In this document: one piece after another, positions 2,495 through 61,950 of the stretch
Layout: every line of letters begins with the position of its first letter
Position numbering within the stretch: position 1 is the first letter of the stretch
Source: Octopus sinensis
Lineage: Eukaryota
Length of the DNA stretch: 64,000 bases
Assembly: GCF_006345805.1 (NCBI RefSeq)
Contig: NC_043004.1
Location: 83,142,001 to 83,206,000, forward strand
Reading direction: 5' to 3'
Position numbers and translations under genes: made by a program
The notes under the pieces: model-generated
What the model was told of the DNA's origin: nothing
Databases searched by the model: none
The model's input: the letters and a program-made list of their open reading frames with translations, nothing else

Positions 2495-3448
2495 CGCTCG
2501 GTGTATACGAATTCCACACCAAAAAACTGCAATCCAATACAAGAAATAACCGGATGCTATCACAGATACATATACATATAAATACTTGTTACTTCCTAGT
2601 AAACCATTTATAATTCCATAAGTAAGAATAGTGCAGCTCGTAATACTACTGAACACAATATATCCTGAAATAATCTGCAATGATTCATTTACCAATGTCA
2701 GGATTGAAGAAAGAGTATCATGGGTGTTACATATTTCGGTAATGTCTCTATGATGCTTGATAAGAAATGCATTCGACGATTGATTTTCCTTTATGTAATG
2801 CTGTGCCTCGTGCGACACCTTATTAAATTCATGAACAAGCGTGAAAACAATTGTAAGATTTACATAGAGGTCAATTACCACGGACATAAAGGATATGCAA
2901 TTAAATACAACCTGCACTATTAAAACAGGTATGATGTATGTGATATGGTTTGGTACAGGATATGTAAAGAACATCAACAAATCAAGACTGAGTAGTGGCA
3001 AAATAAGATGCATAATTAGGCTACAAATGACACTCAAAGCTATTAATATTGATAATCTTCTATATGAATATATTAAAAAGGAATTGTAATATTTTTCATC
3101 TTCATCTTTAATTTCCAGTTTTGTGTATATTTCAATTAGCTGCTTGACATTAGATCCTCTGAAGTGCTTCACCAAACAAAACAAGGAGGTAAAACTCCGG
3201 TACAATACAATATATATATATAAGAATATTACATGAGGGTGAGGAGATTCCAGTTCTAATAAGGCAACAATGTGGCGAACAGGATCTAAAATAATATGCA
3301 TGGAGAGGAGTATATAAAAAATTTGCAAACAAATAGTTTTAAACTTAAAAGATTTCACCGATGACATTTTCAAACTTGCAGTCCTTATAGTGTTAAATTT
3401 TCGATAAAATTCCAGCATTTTAAAGAAGCGAGTTTCATTTAGTTTCAT
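2495..3448 (-). CDS. Gustatory-receptor-like (GRL/7TM ion channel) large first coding exon, cassette 1 (TM1-TM6, 318 codons); TM7 exon(s) not located
   Basis: ATG at 3448. Six hydrophobic segments. GR-type IC2 motif ICNTHDTLSSILTLVNESL before TM5. Ends WCGIRIHRA followed by GTAAGT (2494-2489), phase 0, at the same position as in all paralogues. Confidence 0.8.
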
Positions 3449-3784
3449 ATTTGTTGTAATTACGACTTCGTTACACGTTACTTCTATATGAAAAGCAGCA
3501 ATCGCACAAGTTATATTTCTTTGTTAGATACCTAGTTACTCATTATTTTTTCTGTTTTACTATGTTGCACTGCTTTCCTTCTCACGGAAGTACTAACATT
3601 AAACAAGAAACGTGATAAAGCAGATATATGCTGTCCGGAGTCTTTGAAATCAGATATTGTTTCAAATCTGTTGCTATGGATGTAAAATTACAATATCATC
3701 CACAAAGCATCTTAAGACATGTCAGAGTCAAAATCTATTTCTTAAACAAACACTTCTTAATGCTTATATCAATATAAATATATA

Positions 3785-4215
3785 TCTATCTATATACCTA
3801 CCTGCCTGCCTACCTACCTACCTACCTACCTACCTACCTACCTACCTACCCACCTACTACCTGCCTACCTACCTAACTACATACCTGCCTGCCTGCCTAC
3901 CTACCTATCTACCAACCTACCTACCAACCTACCTACCTACGTATCTATTTATCTACCTATCTAACTATCTGTCTGTGTGCCTGTCTGTCTGTCTGTCTGT
4001 CTGTGTGTTTGTCTATCTATCTATCAATCTATCTATCTATCTACCTGTCTATCTGTCTATCTATCTGTTTTCTTATCTATCTACTTATGTAGCTATATCT
4101 GTATATATATATATATATATATATATATATATATATATATATATATATATATATATATATAACTATTTATCCATCCACGCATCCATCCATCCATCCATTC
4201 ATCTATCTATCTAAA
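3785..4215. repeat. Compound CCTA/GTCT/CTAT/TA microsatellite
   Basis: Direct inspection. Confidence 0.95.
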
Positions 4216-4722
4216 TCTATCTATATATTGTGCAGTGCTTTATATTGCTGCCAGTTCATTTCTCACAAATGCAATAAGTAGGATATTGATGTTACATTGA
4301 TATTAATTAGCATGTATTGTATCAAGCATTGATTCACAACCGAGGTGTGTTGGGTGAGTCAATGCTTTTGTTATATCTACCCCATAAATGAACACTTATA
4401 TTTCTTTGGTGAATACAGTAGCGTGAACACTAATTTACTGATGGTGTATTTCATAGTGGTATTGTCTCCTTTATGTGCACTGGTACGATATATTTATATA
4501 TATGCCTCTGTGTGTGTGTGTGTGTGTGTGGTGTGTTTATATATATAAAATATATATAATATATATATATATATAATATATATATATATATATATATATA
4601 TATATATAAATAGATATATAGACACACACACACACACACACACACACATATATATATTTATATATATTATATATATATATCGGTAGATCGATAGATATAT
4701 TGATATATATATAGATTATGGA

Positions 4723-58430: not shown

Positions 58431-59136
58431 ATTTCTAATGGGGTGTTGAGGATCCTTCTAGGCCGGCTATTTATCTTTCTGACTCTATGTGTGTGCTAGC
58501 TTCCATTATGAGCATTATTATCACAATTGTTTCTACCAATTACATTAGAGTTGTCTCTTGCGGTCTGGAATTCAGATATTCGCCTAGCAACATCTAATCA
58601 AACTTGTCAACAAACCCAATTCTTTTATACGCCGCTTCATACAGTGTGAATACAATTTTGACTGAGACTAAGAGAAAAAATAACACACCCTAAGAATTAC
58701 AGCATTTATTTAAGTCACAGAAATTTCCCCCACCTGATCCACAACTGGCTATATTTTAAGATGTAACTTCCTCTAGTACACAAATAACAGCTAAGAAAAC
58801 TGCACGCACCAGTCAAGGAACTCAAGAAGGAAGTAAAGATTTTTGTAAACGGAGACAAAACCGCTATTTTATAATACTTGGTCTATAATCTACATCAATC
58901 TCCGCTTAGAAAAGAGATCCCAAAAGCTACAAATTGGCACATACAAACAAGCTGATTAAAATTTGCAGGTCAAGAAACTAGTGGTGAAGTTAAATTTGAG
59001 GTTTAGATTTACAAGTAATGGACCTTAACTACCAAGAACCTTAAATAAACCTGAGAGACAATAAGCCTAACTTCACTATTAACCTATGAATACCTATATC
59101 AAAACGTGATCCATAAAGATAAATAATAACACTTAC

Positions 59137-60096
59137 TGATCGGTTTAAACGAAGTCCACACCAAATCATTCCTATGCAATAGAGCATGTAAGTTATAAAC
59201 TTCAGTAGCATATAAAGGTGTACATAGGGAGCAGATTTAAAGGAATTATTTATCATTCCATACGTGGCAATACAGCTGCTTATTATATTAGCAAGGACGA
59301 TAAATCCGGATGATATCTGCAGTGATTCGTTCACAAATCTCAGTATTGCGCTTAGAGTATCGTGTCTATTACATATTTCTTCAATCCCTCTATGTGTCTT
59401 GAACATAACAGTCTTATCTGATTGTTGTTCTTTTAAGCACTTCTGGGCCTCATTCGCCACTTTCTTAAACTCATAAATAAGTGTAAGACTGATTATAAGA
59501 TCAAAATAGAGATCGAATAACACAGTCACCAAAGAGAAACCATTGAAGATGAGTTGTATTGTTAAAACTGGAATGTAATATGTATTATTTGTTGGTACAG
59601 GAAATGTTAAAAACATAAGAATATCGCTACTGCAGAGCGGCAAAATAAGATCCATACACACATTGGAAATGACAGACACGGATATATATACAAATAAAGT
59701 TGTATATGAAAATATTAAATTACAGTTATAATATTTTTTACTTTCCTCTTCAATTTCAAGATCGGCGAATTTTTCAAATAGTTGCTTGTCGTTAGAATCC
59801 CTGAAGAGTTTCACCAAACAGAAGAGTGCTAAGAAACTCCTGTAGAGAATTATGTAACAATACACAAATATTCCACTAGCGTTAGCATTTTGCAATTGTA
59901 TTAAAGTCACAATATGCCGAATCGGGTTTACAATCAAATATATAATGTACAATAAGTAAATTGCAGAGAAACAAATTACTTTCAAATCGAATGTTTTCAG
60001 GATGGATTTATTCATAATATATTTCCGAATATTACTAATTTTTCGATATAATTCCAACATTTTAAACAATTGTGTTTGTTTTGCATCCATACTCAT
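59137..60096 (-). CDS. GRL first coding exon, cassette 6 (320 codons from the first ATG, intact)
   Basis: ATG at 60096 (MSMDAKQTQLFKMLELYRKI); the ORF-track start at 60159 is a GTG. Motifs LTFPVP, YEFKKVANEA and ICNRHDTLSAILRFVNESLQ. Ends WCGLRLNRS|GTAAGT. Confidence 0.8.
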
Positions 60097-61948
60097 TCTA
60101 ATTCCGTCGTATGAAGAGACTTTTGCTTTCAAATAGATAAACACGGCAATAGAGTCCACACGATATATAAAGCAATTTTAAAGTTTTCCGCTCTTTCTTT
60201 CTTGTCTAGATTTGACTGTGTTGTAAAATTTAATGTAACGGTAAAATTGAAACAATAACCGATGGCAAAATAAAGTAATTATGAAAGGCCTGTAGAAATT
60301 CGACAGCATTAGTGTATATGATGTTAGCTTTAACTAGTTGCTAAAGATCTGAATGCCTTTGTACTAAAAATTTTATTGTCATGAAAGTATAAAAGATGTA
60401 AGTCCACTTTCTATGAAACCTGGTCAATATTCCTTTCTGTCTAAACAAAAAACTAATCCGTATTCTTATTTACAGTCGATATAATATTAAATAGCATGTA
60501 TATTTATATGCATAAATATACATATATATAACTACACAAACACACATATACACATATGTATCCATATGTATGTGCATACAAGGGTGTGTGTATATATATA
60601 TATCTGCATACATACACACAAACACACACACCTATATATGTATGTATATGTGTATATATATATGTATATAAAAATAAATATATATATATATATATATATA
60701 TATATATATGTGGTTAATATTCCTTTCTGTCTAAACAAAAAACAAATCCGTATTCTTATTTACAGTCGATATAATATTAAATAGCATGTATATTTATATG
60801 CATAAATATACATATATCTAAATACACAAACACACATATACACATATGTATCCATATGTGTGTGCATACATGGGTGTGTGTATATATATATATCTGCATA
60901 CATACACACAAACACACAAACTTATATATGTATGTATACGTGTATGTGTATGTATATAAATATATATATATATATAAATATATATATATATATATAAATA
61001 CATATATACATACACATATACATATATAAGGGTGTGTGTTTGTGTGTATGTATGCAGATATATATATACACACACCCATGTATGCACATACGTACGGATA
61101 CATATGTATAAATGTGTGTTTATGTATTTATATATATGTATATATATGCATATAAATATACATGCTATTTAATATTATATCGACTGTAAATAAGAATACG
61201 GATTTGTTATTTGTTTAGACAGAAAGGAATATTGACCAGGTTTCATAGAAAGTGGTCTTACATCTTTTATACTTTCATGACAACAAACTTTATAGTTCAA
61301 ACGCTTTCAGATCTTTAGCAACTGCTTAAAGCTAACATCATATACACTAATGCTGTCGAATTTCTACAGGCCTTTCAAAATTACTTTATTTTGCCATCGG
61401 TTATTGTTTCAATTCTACCGTTACATTAAATTTTACAACACAGACAAAACTAGACAAGAAATAAAGAGCGGAAAACTTTAAAAATTGCTTTATATATCGT
61501 GTGGACTCTATTGCCGTGATTATCTATTTGAAAGCAAAACACTATTAATACGACGGAATTAGAATGAGCATGAAAGCAAAGCAAACACGATTCTTTAAAA
61601 TGTTGGAATTATATCGAAAAATTAGTAATATTCGGAAATATATTATGAATAAATCCATCCTGAAAACATTCGATTTGAAAGTAATTTGTTTCTCTGCAAT
61701 TTACTTATTGTACATTACATAATTGATTGTAAACCCGATTCGGCATATTGTGACTTTAATACAAATGTAAAATGCTAAAACAAGTGGAATATTTGTGTAT
61801 TGTTACGTAATTCTCTAGAGGAGTTTCTTAACACTCTTCTGTTTGGTGAAACTCTTCAGGGATTCTAACGACAAGCAACTATTTGAAAAATCCGCCGATC
61901 TTGAAAATGAAGAGGAAAGTATAATATATTATAACTGTAATTTAATAT
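59713..61948. repeat. Large imperfect palindrome centred on a TA-rich tract (about 60960-61000)
   Basis: About 61000-61948 is the reverse complement of 59713-60975. The left arm carries an extra tandem copy of about 294 bp (60427-60720). Confidence 0.92.
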
Positions 61949-61950
61949 AT
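61564..61950 (+). pseudogene. Inverted, 3'-truncated duplicate of GRL cassette 6
   Basis: Translates MSMKAKQTRFFKMLELYRKISNIRKYIMNKSILKTFDLKVICFSAIYLLYIT*LIVNPIRHIVTLIQM*NAKTSGIFVYCYVIL*RSFLTLFCLVKLFRDSNDKQLFEKSADLENEEESIIYYNCNLI. It has three stops and ends in a CA repeat. Confidence 0.9.

Follow-up and report, generated by a model that had tools for sequence, protein, structure and literature searches.

Long variable exons and one set of shared 3′ exons at a probable gustatory-receptor-like locus of Octopus sinensis

The stretch of 64,000 nucleotides from Octopus sinensis analyzed here (the window, its first letter being position 1) contains a family of long paralogous exons, which we label A, ψ, B, C, D, and E, as well as three short exons that occur once. 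A preceding first-pass annotation of the window had suspected an octopus origin, and this was borne out: the window belongs to O. sinensis chromosome CM016866.1, and bases 19909-64000, which were compared, are 100% identical over 44,092 nt to the locus of LOC118764607 that was extracted from isoform X1 (L002), which is oriented opposite to the window. In the NCBI annotation LOC118764607 is one 87-kb gene, and exons C, D, and E lie inside it. We consider it probable that the window represents the 3′ part of this multi-isoform gustatory-receptor-like (GRL) gene together with the start of a second unit, a confidence that covers the family and the architecture of the gene jointly and does not extend to a chemosensory function. 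In the following list, given in the reading direction of the minus strand, the long exons are called variable and the short ones constant; TM denotes transmembrane segments, IL and EL denote intracellular and extracellular loops, and IC2 is an intracellular motif of the long exons.

60956-61959, plus strand: inverted partial duplicate of the 5′ half of exon E together with about 550 bp of its upstream flank; several in-frame stops

59137-60096, minus strand: variable exon E, a putative first exon; intact, 320 codons from ATG (MSMDAKQ...) to ...LRLNRS, spanning TM1-TM6; GTAAGT phase-0 donor after 59137

53700-54653, minus strand: variable exon D, a pseudo-exon; in frame throughout, with TAA at 53886-53888 and a degenerated IC2 motif

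40266-41243, minus strand: variable exon C, a putative first exon; intact, 326 codons; GTGAGT donor; the last variable exon before the constants

35930-35998, minus strand: constant exon 2, VHSITRSIHYMQFQDIKPEVVAK; cytoplasmic continuation of TM6; AG acceptor, GTAAGC donor, phase 0 on both sides

31959-32048, minus strand: constant exon 3, ILVFLNRLTTESHGIDVGGCFVITPSSTLT; IL3, S7a helix, and β-hairpin; AG acceptor, GT donor, phase 0 on both sides

29909-29965, minus strand: constant exon 4, MIGSFITYILVVIQTKSL followed by TAA; TM7 (S7b) with the TY.....Q motif; AG acceptor

17772-18728, minus strand: variable-type exon B; intact, 319 codons; downstream of the constants

14178-14903, minus strand: variable-type exon ψ, a pseudo-exon with about 100 codons deleted (TM1-TM2), frameshifts, and a stop

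2495-3448, minus strand: variable-type exon A; intact, 318 codons; downstream of the constants

The long exons were found by listing the open reading frames (ORFs) of the window and by subsequent tblastn of five long minus-strand ORFs against it. This yielded six paralogous blocks of about 320 codons on the minus strand and one fragment on the plus strand, with pairwise amino acid identities of 38-50% and E-values of 1e-56 to 1e-99. Intact copies in the window are A, B, C, and E only; D, ψ, and the inverted fragment are disabled. Their alignment contains the motifs ETxFxKxLEFY, T[YF]P, EFNKVANEA, ICNxHDxLSxIL.LVNESLQ, and WCGxxLNxS, and in A, ψ, B, C, D, and E the similarity stops at one common codon (...L[NH][RK][SA]), which is followed by GTAAGT, GTGAGT, or GTAAGC and hence by a phase-0 donor. 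On these points the first-pass annotation has stood: the six minus-strand paralogous exons and the inverted fragment it had described were confirmed by tblastn over the window, the shared motifs it had listed are all present in the alignment, and the phase-0 intron right after TM6, which it had named as a hallmark of the family, is matched by a GT donor at the same codon in all six copies; moreover, position 2495, its boundary of the cluster, is the last base of exon A. In the plus-strand fragment, coding similarity is found at 61501-61950, with 86% amino acid identity to the N-terminus of E, and on the nucleotide level 60956-61959 is an inverted copy of 59701-60709 (93% identity over 1010 nt in blastn, axis near 60830). 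The window thereby carries a near-palindromic duplication at 59701-61959; in L002, inverted E-type fragments are located at 53466-54105 and 64832-65617.

The database relatives closest to the window exons are products of O. sinensis LOC118764608 and LOC118764607, both of which extend about 70 residues past the large exon and end in ...MIGSFITYILVVIQTK(P/S)L. A tblastn search with this tail found exactly one copy in the window, in the form of the three short minus-strand exons, which in the reading direction of that strand come after E, D, and C and before B, ψ, and A. The peptide of constant exon 2 is identical to that in isoforms X1 and X3 of LOC118764607, and an alternative acceptor resides inside the same exon at 35956 (ttcag followed by GAC), isoforms X2 and X4 starting at DIKPEVVAK. 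Use of this acceptor, as in NCBI models X2 and X4 and in isoform X2 of O. bimaculoides, drops 14 residues (VHSITRSIHYMQFQ) of the cytoplasmic extension of TM6. The acceptor of constant exon 2 is immediately preceded by a long (ATT)n microsatellite (about 36015-36085). Across all six frames of the window, constant exon 4 is the sole match to the TM7 motif; no second constant set for B, ψ, and A was found in the window, either by tblastn with the constant peptides of LOC118764606, LOC118764607, and LOC118764608 or by a six-frame regular-expression search for the TM7 motif.

The relation between the long and the short exons becomes apparent from the complete gene. L002 carries eight plus-strand variable exons (at 9986, 25443, 28266, 47178, 55699, 66959 (E), 72438 (D), and 85875 (C)), after which the three constants follow; two inverted fragments are also present. 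Exon E is 100% identical to L002 66959-68074, inside LOC118764607. Isoforms X1 and X2 of this gene, which are Gnomon models like X3 and X4, start at the first variable exon (L002 10001), and X3 and X4 start in the second (about 25.4 kb). All four end in the constants of the window, their first exons being 55-80 kb upstream. Because C, D, and E lie in one gene, and the isoforms of this gene combine the same constants with different long first exons, we read the locus as an alternative-first-exon locus, a type that has long been known from insect Gr and Or genes (PMC6175461). Comparable arrangements are found elsewhere: LOC118764608 has five full-length variable exons and a fragment, then three constants, with isoforms X1 and X3 from different variable exons; LOC118764606 has two variable exons and three constants; and in LOC106880719, the O. 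bimaculoides ortholog, the variable exons stand in the same order (B′-like, ψ′-like, E, D, C), followed by the constants. A GT donor is present at the common codon in all intact variable exons that the donor-motif script could test.

This evidence bears directly on the view, put forward in the first-pass annotation, that the window holds a tandem array of independent and complete GRL genes under birth-and-death evolution, each with downstream exons of its own. The large exons are indeed paralogous, are arranged in tandem, and begin with their own ATG, and pseudogenised members and recent duplicates occur among them, all of which such an array would also display. However, there is one set of TM7 exons in 64 kb (tblastn with three constant queries and motif scan), NCBI isoforms from different first exons use the same constants, and the layout of variable and constant exons recurs at three other loci, so that we regard an array of independent genes as highly improbable. 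The designation as a tandem cluster of genes thus had to be given up: no copy has TM7 exons of its own, the single constant set having been missed, and exons C, D, and E are not independent genes but parts of LOC118764607, whose isoforms share the constants. Considered jointly with the family assignment presented below, it is probable that the window exons for the most part are not genes in their own right but alternative first exons that can be exchanged for one another in front of a common tail.

Since B is located downstream of the constants, it is assigned to a following unit with 3′ exons outside the window. With respect to LOC118764607, B is a paralog of the first variable exon (67% identity) and ψ a paralog of the second. 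Because the downstream unit opens with these two exons, a duplication of the whole unit is suggested. Exons B and A would splice to constants beyond the window, and their partner exons may be situated in the approximately 44 kb that separate window base 1 from the upstream end of L003, which comprises the LOC118764606 locus and a 10-kb flank; otherwise they would be orphans. Within about 0.5 Mb of CM016866.1 (82.74-83.27 Mb) there are at least four GRL units, namely LOC118764608, LOC118764606, the unannotated unit with B, ψ, and A, and LOC118764607. The annotated ones among these units each have three constant exons of their own, together with two to eight variable exons. Between LOC118764607 and LOC118764608, the constants differ at only about 5 of 71 residues and the variable exons by 40-60%.

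We then turn to the protein family to which these exons belong. The large exons alone gave nothing relevant in a Pfam scan, a search of the PDB with a single sequence found nothing, and word-indexed homolog searches returned few relatives (3 and 12 proteins). The link to 7tm_7 came from an exhaustive HMMER search, in which a profile built from six family members was compared with 1.84 billion representative proteins and yielded 70 hits. Among the 48 distant ones, 39 carry Pfam 7tm_7 (best E-value 4.4e-32), 30 Trehalose_recp, and 7 7tm_6, and their consensus contains H..L.......N before TM5 and TY..V..QF in TM7. Isoforms X3 and X4 reach 27.4 and 30.3 bits against Pfam 7tm_7, the gathering score of which is 26.6. 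A profile of 55 sequences, headed by the product of C and the constants, matched only insect odorant receptor (OR), gustatory receptor (GR), and Orco chains in the PDB, with E-values of 2.4e-13 for MhOR5, 6.8e-11 for Gr64a, about 1e-8 for Orco, and 1.8e-5 for Gr43a; inclusion of the TM7 exons and the broader profile had been required for such matches. Scans of the large exons and the spliced products gave no Pfam hit to Neur_chan.

The same relationship emerges from the predicted fold. Exon C joined to the constants was modelled with AlphaFold2 on the 55-sequence alignment, which included GRL homologs, and the resulting model has a predicted local distance difference test score (pLDDT) of 91.9 and a predicted TM-score (pTM) of 0.91; a first run on a 6-sequence alignment had given a pLDDT of 41, and that model was not used. 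In a Foldseek comparison with the PDB, the top 24 matches are all insect OR, Orco, or GR structures (TM-score 0.51-0.70, probability 1.00), and the next match has an E-value of 0.6 and a TM-score of 0.17. No Cys-loop chain is found among the 50 best structural matches listed, nothing beyond rank 24 being significant. According to DSSP the model ends in a helix at 344-359, an EE..EE hairpin, and a helix at 374-393. Orco reportedly displays a split S7a/S7b with an intervening hairpin, as described by Butterwick in 2018, and the model resembles this arrangement.

The spliced products comprise 389-397 amino acids with seven hydrophobic segments, which correspond in number to seven long helices in the model. 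Positively charged residues are distributed unevenly, with 26 K and R on the side of the N-terminus and the ILs and 2 on the side of the ELs and the C-terminus, so that a cytoplasmic N-terminus is predicted; in this predicted topology the ILs measure 34, 54, and 52 residues and the ELs 12, 23, and 14. For comparison, GRL proteins have been defined by a length of approximately 350-500 amino acids, seven TMs, an intracellular N-terminus, and ILs that are longer than the ELs (Benton et al. 2020, PMC7746228); a TYhhhhhQF motif in TM7 is a further family feature. The spliced products agree with this definition in length, number of TMs, and predicted topology. Their TM7 reads SFITYILVVIQTK, in which T, Y, and Q are present with five hydrophobic residues in between, corresponding to three of four motif positions, and it aligns with TY..V..QF of the distant GRLs. 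Moreover, three phase-0 introns interrupt the 3′ part of LOC118764607 (after the variable exon and after constants 2 and 3), and a sea-urchin 7tm_7 gene (locus L004) likewise has three phase-0 introns, the first at the identical aligned position, the second at most 2 codons off, and the third at most 1 codon off.

An unrelated seven-helix fold that resembles GRs merely in hydropathy, such as that of G-protein-coupled receptors (GPCRs), would be in keeping with the missing Pfam hits of the isolated large exons. However, GPCR structures reach TM-scores of 0.12-0.15 with E-values above 0.8 against the model, as opposed to the 24 insect chains at probability 1.00; the distribution of positive charges puts the N-terminus in the cytoplasm, and the profile links lead to 7tm_7, which leaves this explanation with a negligible probability. 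A GPCR fold was rejected on the structural matches (GPCR TM-score ≤0.15) together with the predicted cytoplasmic N-terminus. Profile, fold, topology, TM7 motif, and introns make the membership of the exons in the Gr/GRL family of seven-transmembrane ion channels (7TMICs; Pfam 7tm_7) well supported. The family had been proposed in the first-pass annotation together with a test by the 7tm_7 profile and by comparison with Orco and Gr structures; X3 and X4 exceed the gathering score, insect OR, Orco, and GR chains occupy the structural ranks down to 24, and the GPCR fold named there as a refutation was not seen.

A number of observations weigh against this assignment and against the proposed architecture. 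The final T of the TM7 motif TY.....QT takes the place of the F of TY.....QF. The product of C and the constants, although covering positions 31-367 of 370 in the 7tm_7 profile, scores 21.2 bits (E-value 2e-4) and remains below the gathering score, and the product of E and the constants gives no Pfam hit. The six-sequence profile found nothing in the PDB, and because it misses the GRs there on its own, the link to the insect receptors is transitive. With regard to the architecture, the NCBI isoform models are computational predictions, and the proteins that would result from joining A, B, C, or E to the constants have no exact match among public proteins. Exons B, ψ, and A are without 3′ partner exons in the window. 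Finally, a search for a promoter-like element upstream of 11 diverse variable exons found shared k-mers no more often than in random-window controls.

Some of these points would equally be expected if C, E, A, and B were decaying or unused relics and the far-upstream first exons annotated by NCBI were the only functional ones: no annotated or deposited product uses any of the four, D, ψ, and the inverted fragment are clearly dead, and A and B have no partners within the window. On the other hand, ORFs of full length have been retained in all four, as have the start codons and the consensus donors, the ratios of nonsynonymous to synonymous substitution rates (dN/dS) of these exons versus their paralogs are 0.37-0.58 and not about 1, and the orthologs of C and E are intact in O. 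bimaculoides. We therefore consider it unlikely that the four are relics, albeit not to the degree that applies to independent genes. The pairwise dN/dS of 0.37-0.58 among the intact variable exons tested shows that purifying selection, though relaxed, has acted on them as coding sequence.

Duplication and decay are nevertheless prominent among the variable exons. O. sinensis possesses four exons of the E type, with identities of 88-100% to E, in addition to two inverted fragments, as opposed to one E-type exon in O. bimaculoides, so that the E-type amplification looks recent and species-specific. Exon D contains a stop in both octopuses (53886-53888 in the window; the O. bimaculoides exon is at about 32069-33058 of locus L005), but the positions of the stops differ, which would be explained by independent inactivation or by an old pseudo-exon that has been gathering lesions. 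Birth-and-death is thus real, and besides whole units it affects exons inside alternatively spliced genes. From the birth-and-death array of the first-pass annotation, the duplication and decay remain, as seen in the pseudo-exons, the recent E-type duplicates, and the inverted fragment; what does not remain is an array of complete genes. In O. bimaculoides, L005 also contains an inverted second copy of all three constants (50545-52809, minus strand) a few kb upstream of the functional set (56117-59271, plus strand), which may reflect either a genuine inverted duplication or an error of the assembly.

From the arrangement of interchangeable first exons and a shared tail, the following mode of expression can be proposed. 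Each long variable exon would provide its own start codon, the N-terminus through TM6, and a phase-0 donor. Transcription would start at one variable exon, presumably from an independent promoter, and the donor of this exon would join the acceptor of constant exon 2, whereby any downstream variable exons are removed as intron; exons C and E of the window would be used as first exons in this manner. The variable exon would supply the region of the ligand pocket, as in solved insect OR/GR structures, and the constants would supply the cytoplasmic end of TM6, IL3 with S7a, the β-hairpin, and the pore-lining TM7. Consequently, the isoforms would differ in their ligand-binding body and tuning and would share the pore and the subunit-contact surfaces, which could allow different isoforms to co-assemble. 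The products may be tetrameric ligand-gated cation channels used in chemosensation.

The closest known counterparts of this design are insect loci: Drosophila Gr28b, Gr39a, and Gr23a as well as Blattella Gr60a-m have alternative long first exons (Clyne 2000 and Robertson 2003, as cited in passages of PMC6175461). The Gr28b/Gr39a-type layout is present in the window, with E, D, and C upstream of a single constant set. In both groups tandem long exons with ATG, which reach from the N-terminus to TM6, stand before three shared short final exons with phase-0 introns, to which they are alternatively spliced in the insects and, according to the NCBI isoform models, in the octopus; some of the isoform exons are pseudogenic, and family (Pfam 7tm_7) and fold are the same. 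The octopus locus differs from the insect ones in its lophotrochozoan host, in its much larger, transposon-filled introns (4-80 kb), and in a TM7 motif with QT at its end in place of QF. At the clustered protocadherin and UGT1A loci, shared constants are likewise spliced to an array of variable first exons, each of which presumably has a promoter of its own; however, the proteins encoded there are unrelated, and the search upstream of the octopus variable exons revealed no conserved promoter element.

GRL proteins of non-arthropod animals were reportedly described in 2015 by Robertson and by Saina. Such proteins, for example that of sea urchin LOC115920745 (P0066), share with the octopus products a length of about 390 amino acids, seven TMs, a cytoplasmic N-terminus, long intracellular loops, the TM7 motif, three 3′ phase-0 introns at matching positions, and mutual profile hits. 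The octopus products are 15-20% identical to non-cephalopod GRLs and constitute a subfamily specific to octopods, in which particular N-terminal and IC2 motifs are conserved. GRLs have been recorded throughout Protostomia, molluscs included (PMC7746228), and the UniProt name "Gustatory receptor" is already attached to an O. bimaculoides relative of LOC118764606. Family and sequences were thus known before, since GRLs have been reported from molluscs and the present genes are already listed in NCBI/RefSeq under the name "uncharacterized protein", with several isoforms. A literature search that did not include Robertson 2015 found no paper dedicated to cephalopod GRLs and none describing this exon layout outside arthropods. 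The present analysis ties the octopod subfamily firmly to the ion-channel fold of insect ORs and GRs and recognises an alternative-first-exon gene of the Gr28b/Gr39a style in a lophotrochozoan. Moreover, with the exon map, in which the first exons C, E, A, and B are included as intact but unannotated, expression and function become open to direct tests.

With respect to function, the octopus chemotactile receptors (CRs), which are derived from nicotinic acetylcholine receptors (nAChRs), offer a parallel as lineage-expanded putative ionotropic receptors of the same animals. They are, however, pentameric Cys-loop proteins with neither sequence nor fold kinship to 7TMICs, and sucker expression and ligands have been demonstrated for CRs, whereas the GRLs are known from sequence. 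If the latter were expressed in cephalopod sensory epithelia, they would widen a picture of octopus chemosensation that is centred on the nAChR-derived CRs, and the finding would be relevant to the question of whether GR genes owe their variable/constant exon design to ancient origin or to convergence. As a tentative reading, octopods may possess a multi-locus GRL system with at least four units on one chromosome and about 20 variable exons, which would serve in sucker or olfactory cells as a second ionotropic repertoire beside the CRs, a role for which the first-pass annotation had also argued, its exon design being either ancestral to protostome GR/GRL genes or convergent. It is also possible, though we do not favour it, that the proteins are GRLs with a role other than that of external chemoreceptors, for instance in development or in internal, light, or heat sensing: some GRLs, such as one from Nematostella, are reported to have non-chemosensory roles (Benton et al. 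2020, PMC7746228), and light as well as heat are sensed by Gr28b (PMC6175461). The lineage-specific multiplication of the exon for the ligand pocket, a relaxed constraint with dN/dS values of about 0.5, pseudogenisation, and the 4 versus 1 copies of the E type are instead typical of environmental chemoreceptors, which argues circumstantially against such a role.

The window contains several further features. Transposon ORFs that fill the introns include a long interspersed nuclear element (LINE) with endonuclease and reverse transcriptase (RT) at 43214-45706 (region 43214-46406), an RT/zf-RVT fragment at 23540-25009, and a mariner/Mos1-type transposase ORF at 28235-29047. The long ORFs at 19868-20569, 48278-49078, and 49085-49735 gave no Pfam hit. 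Simple repeats at 321-1077 and 10131-10751 create long spurious ORFs with MYVC repeats and poly-L/poly-K tracts.

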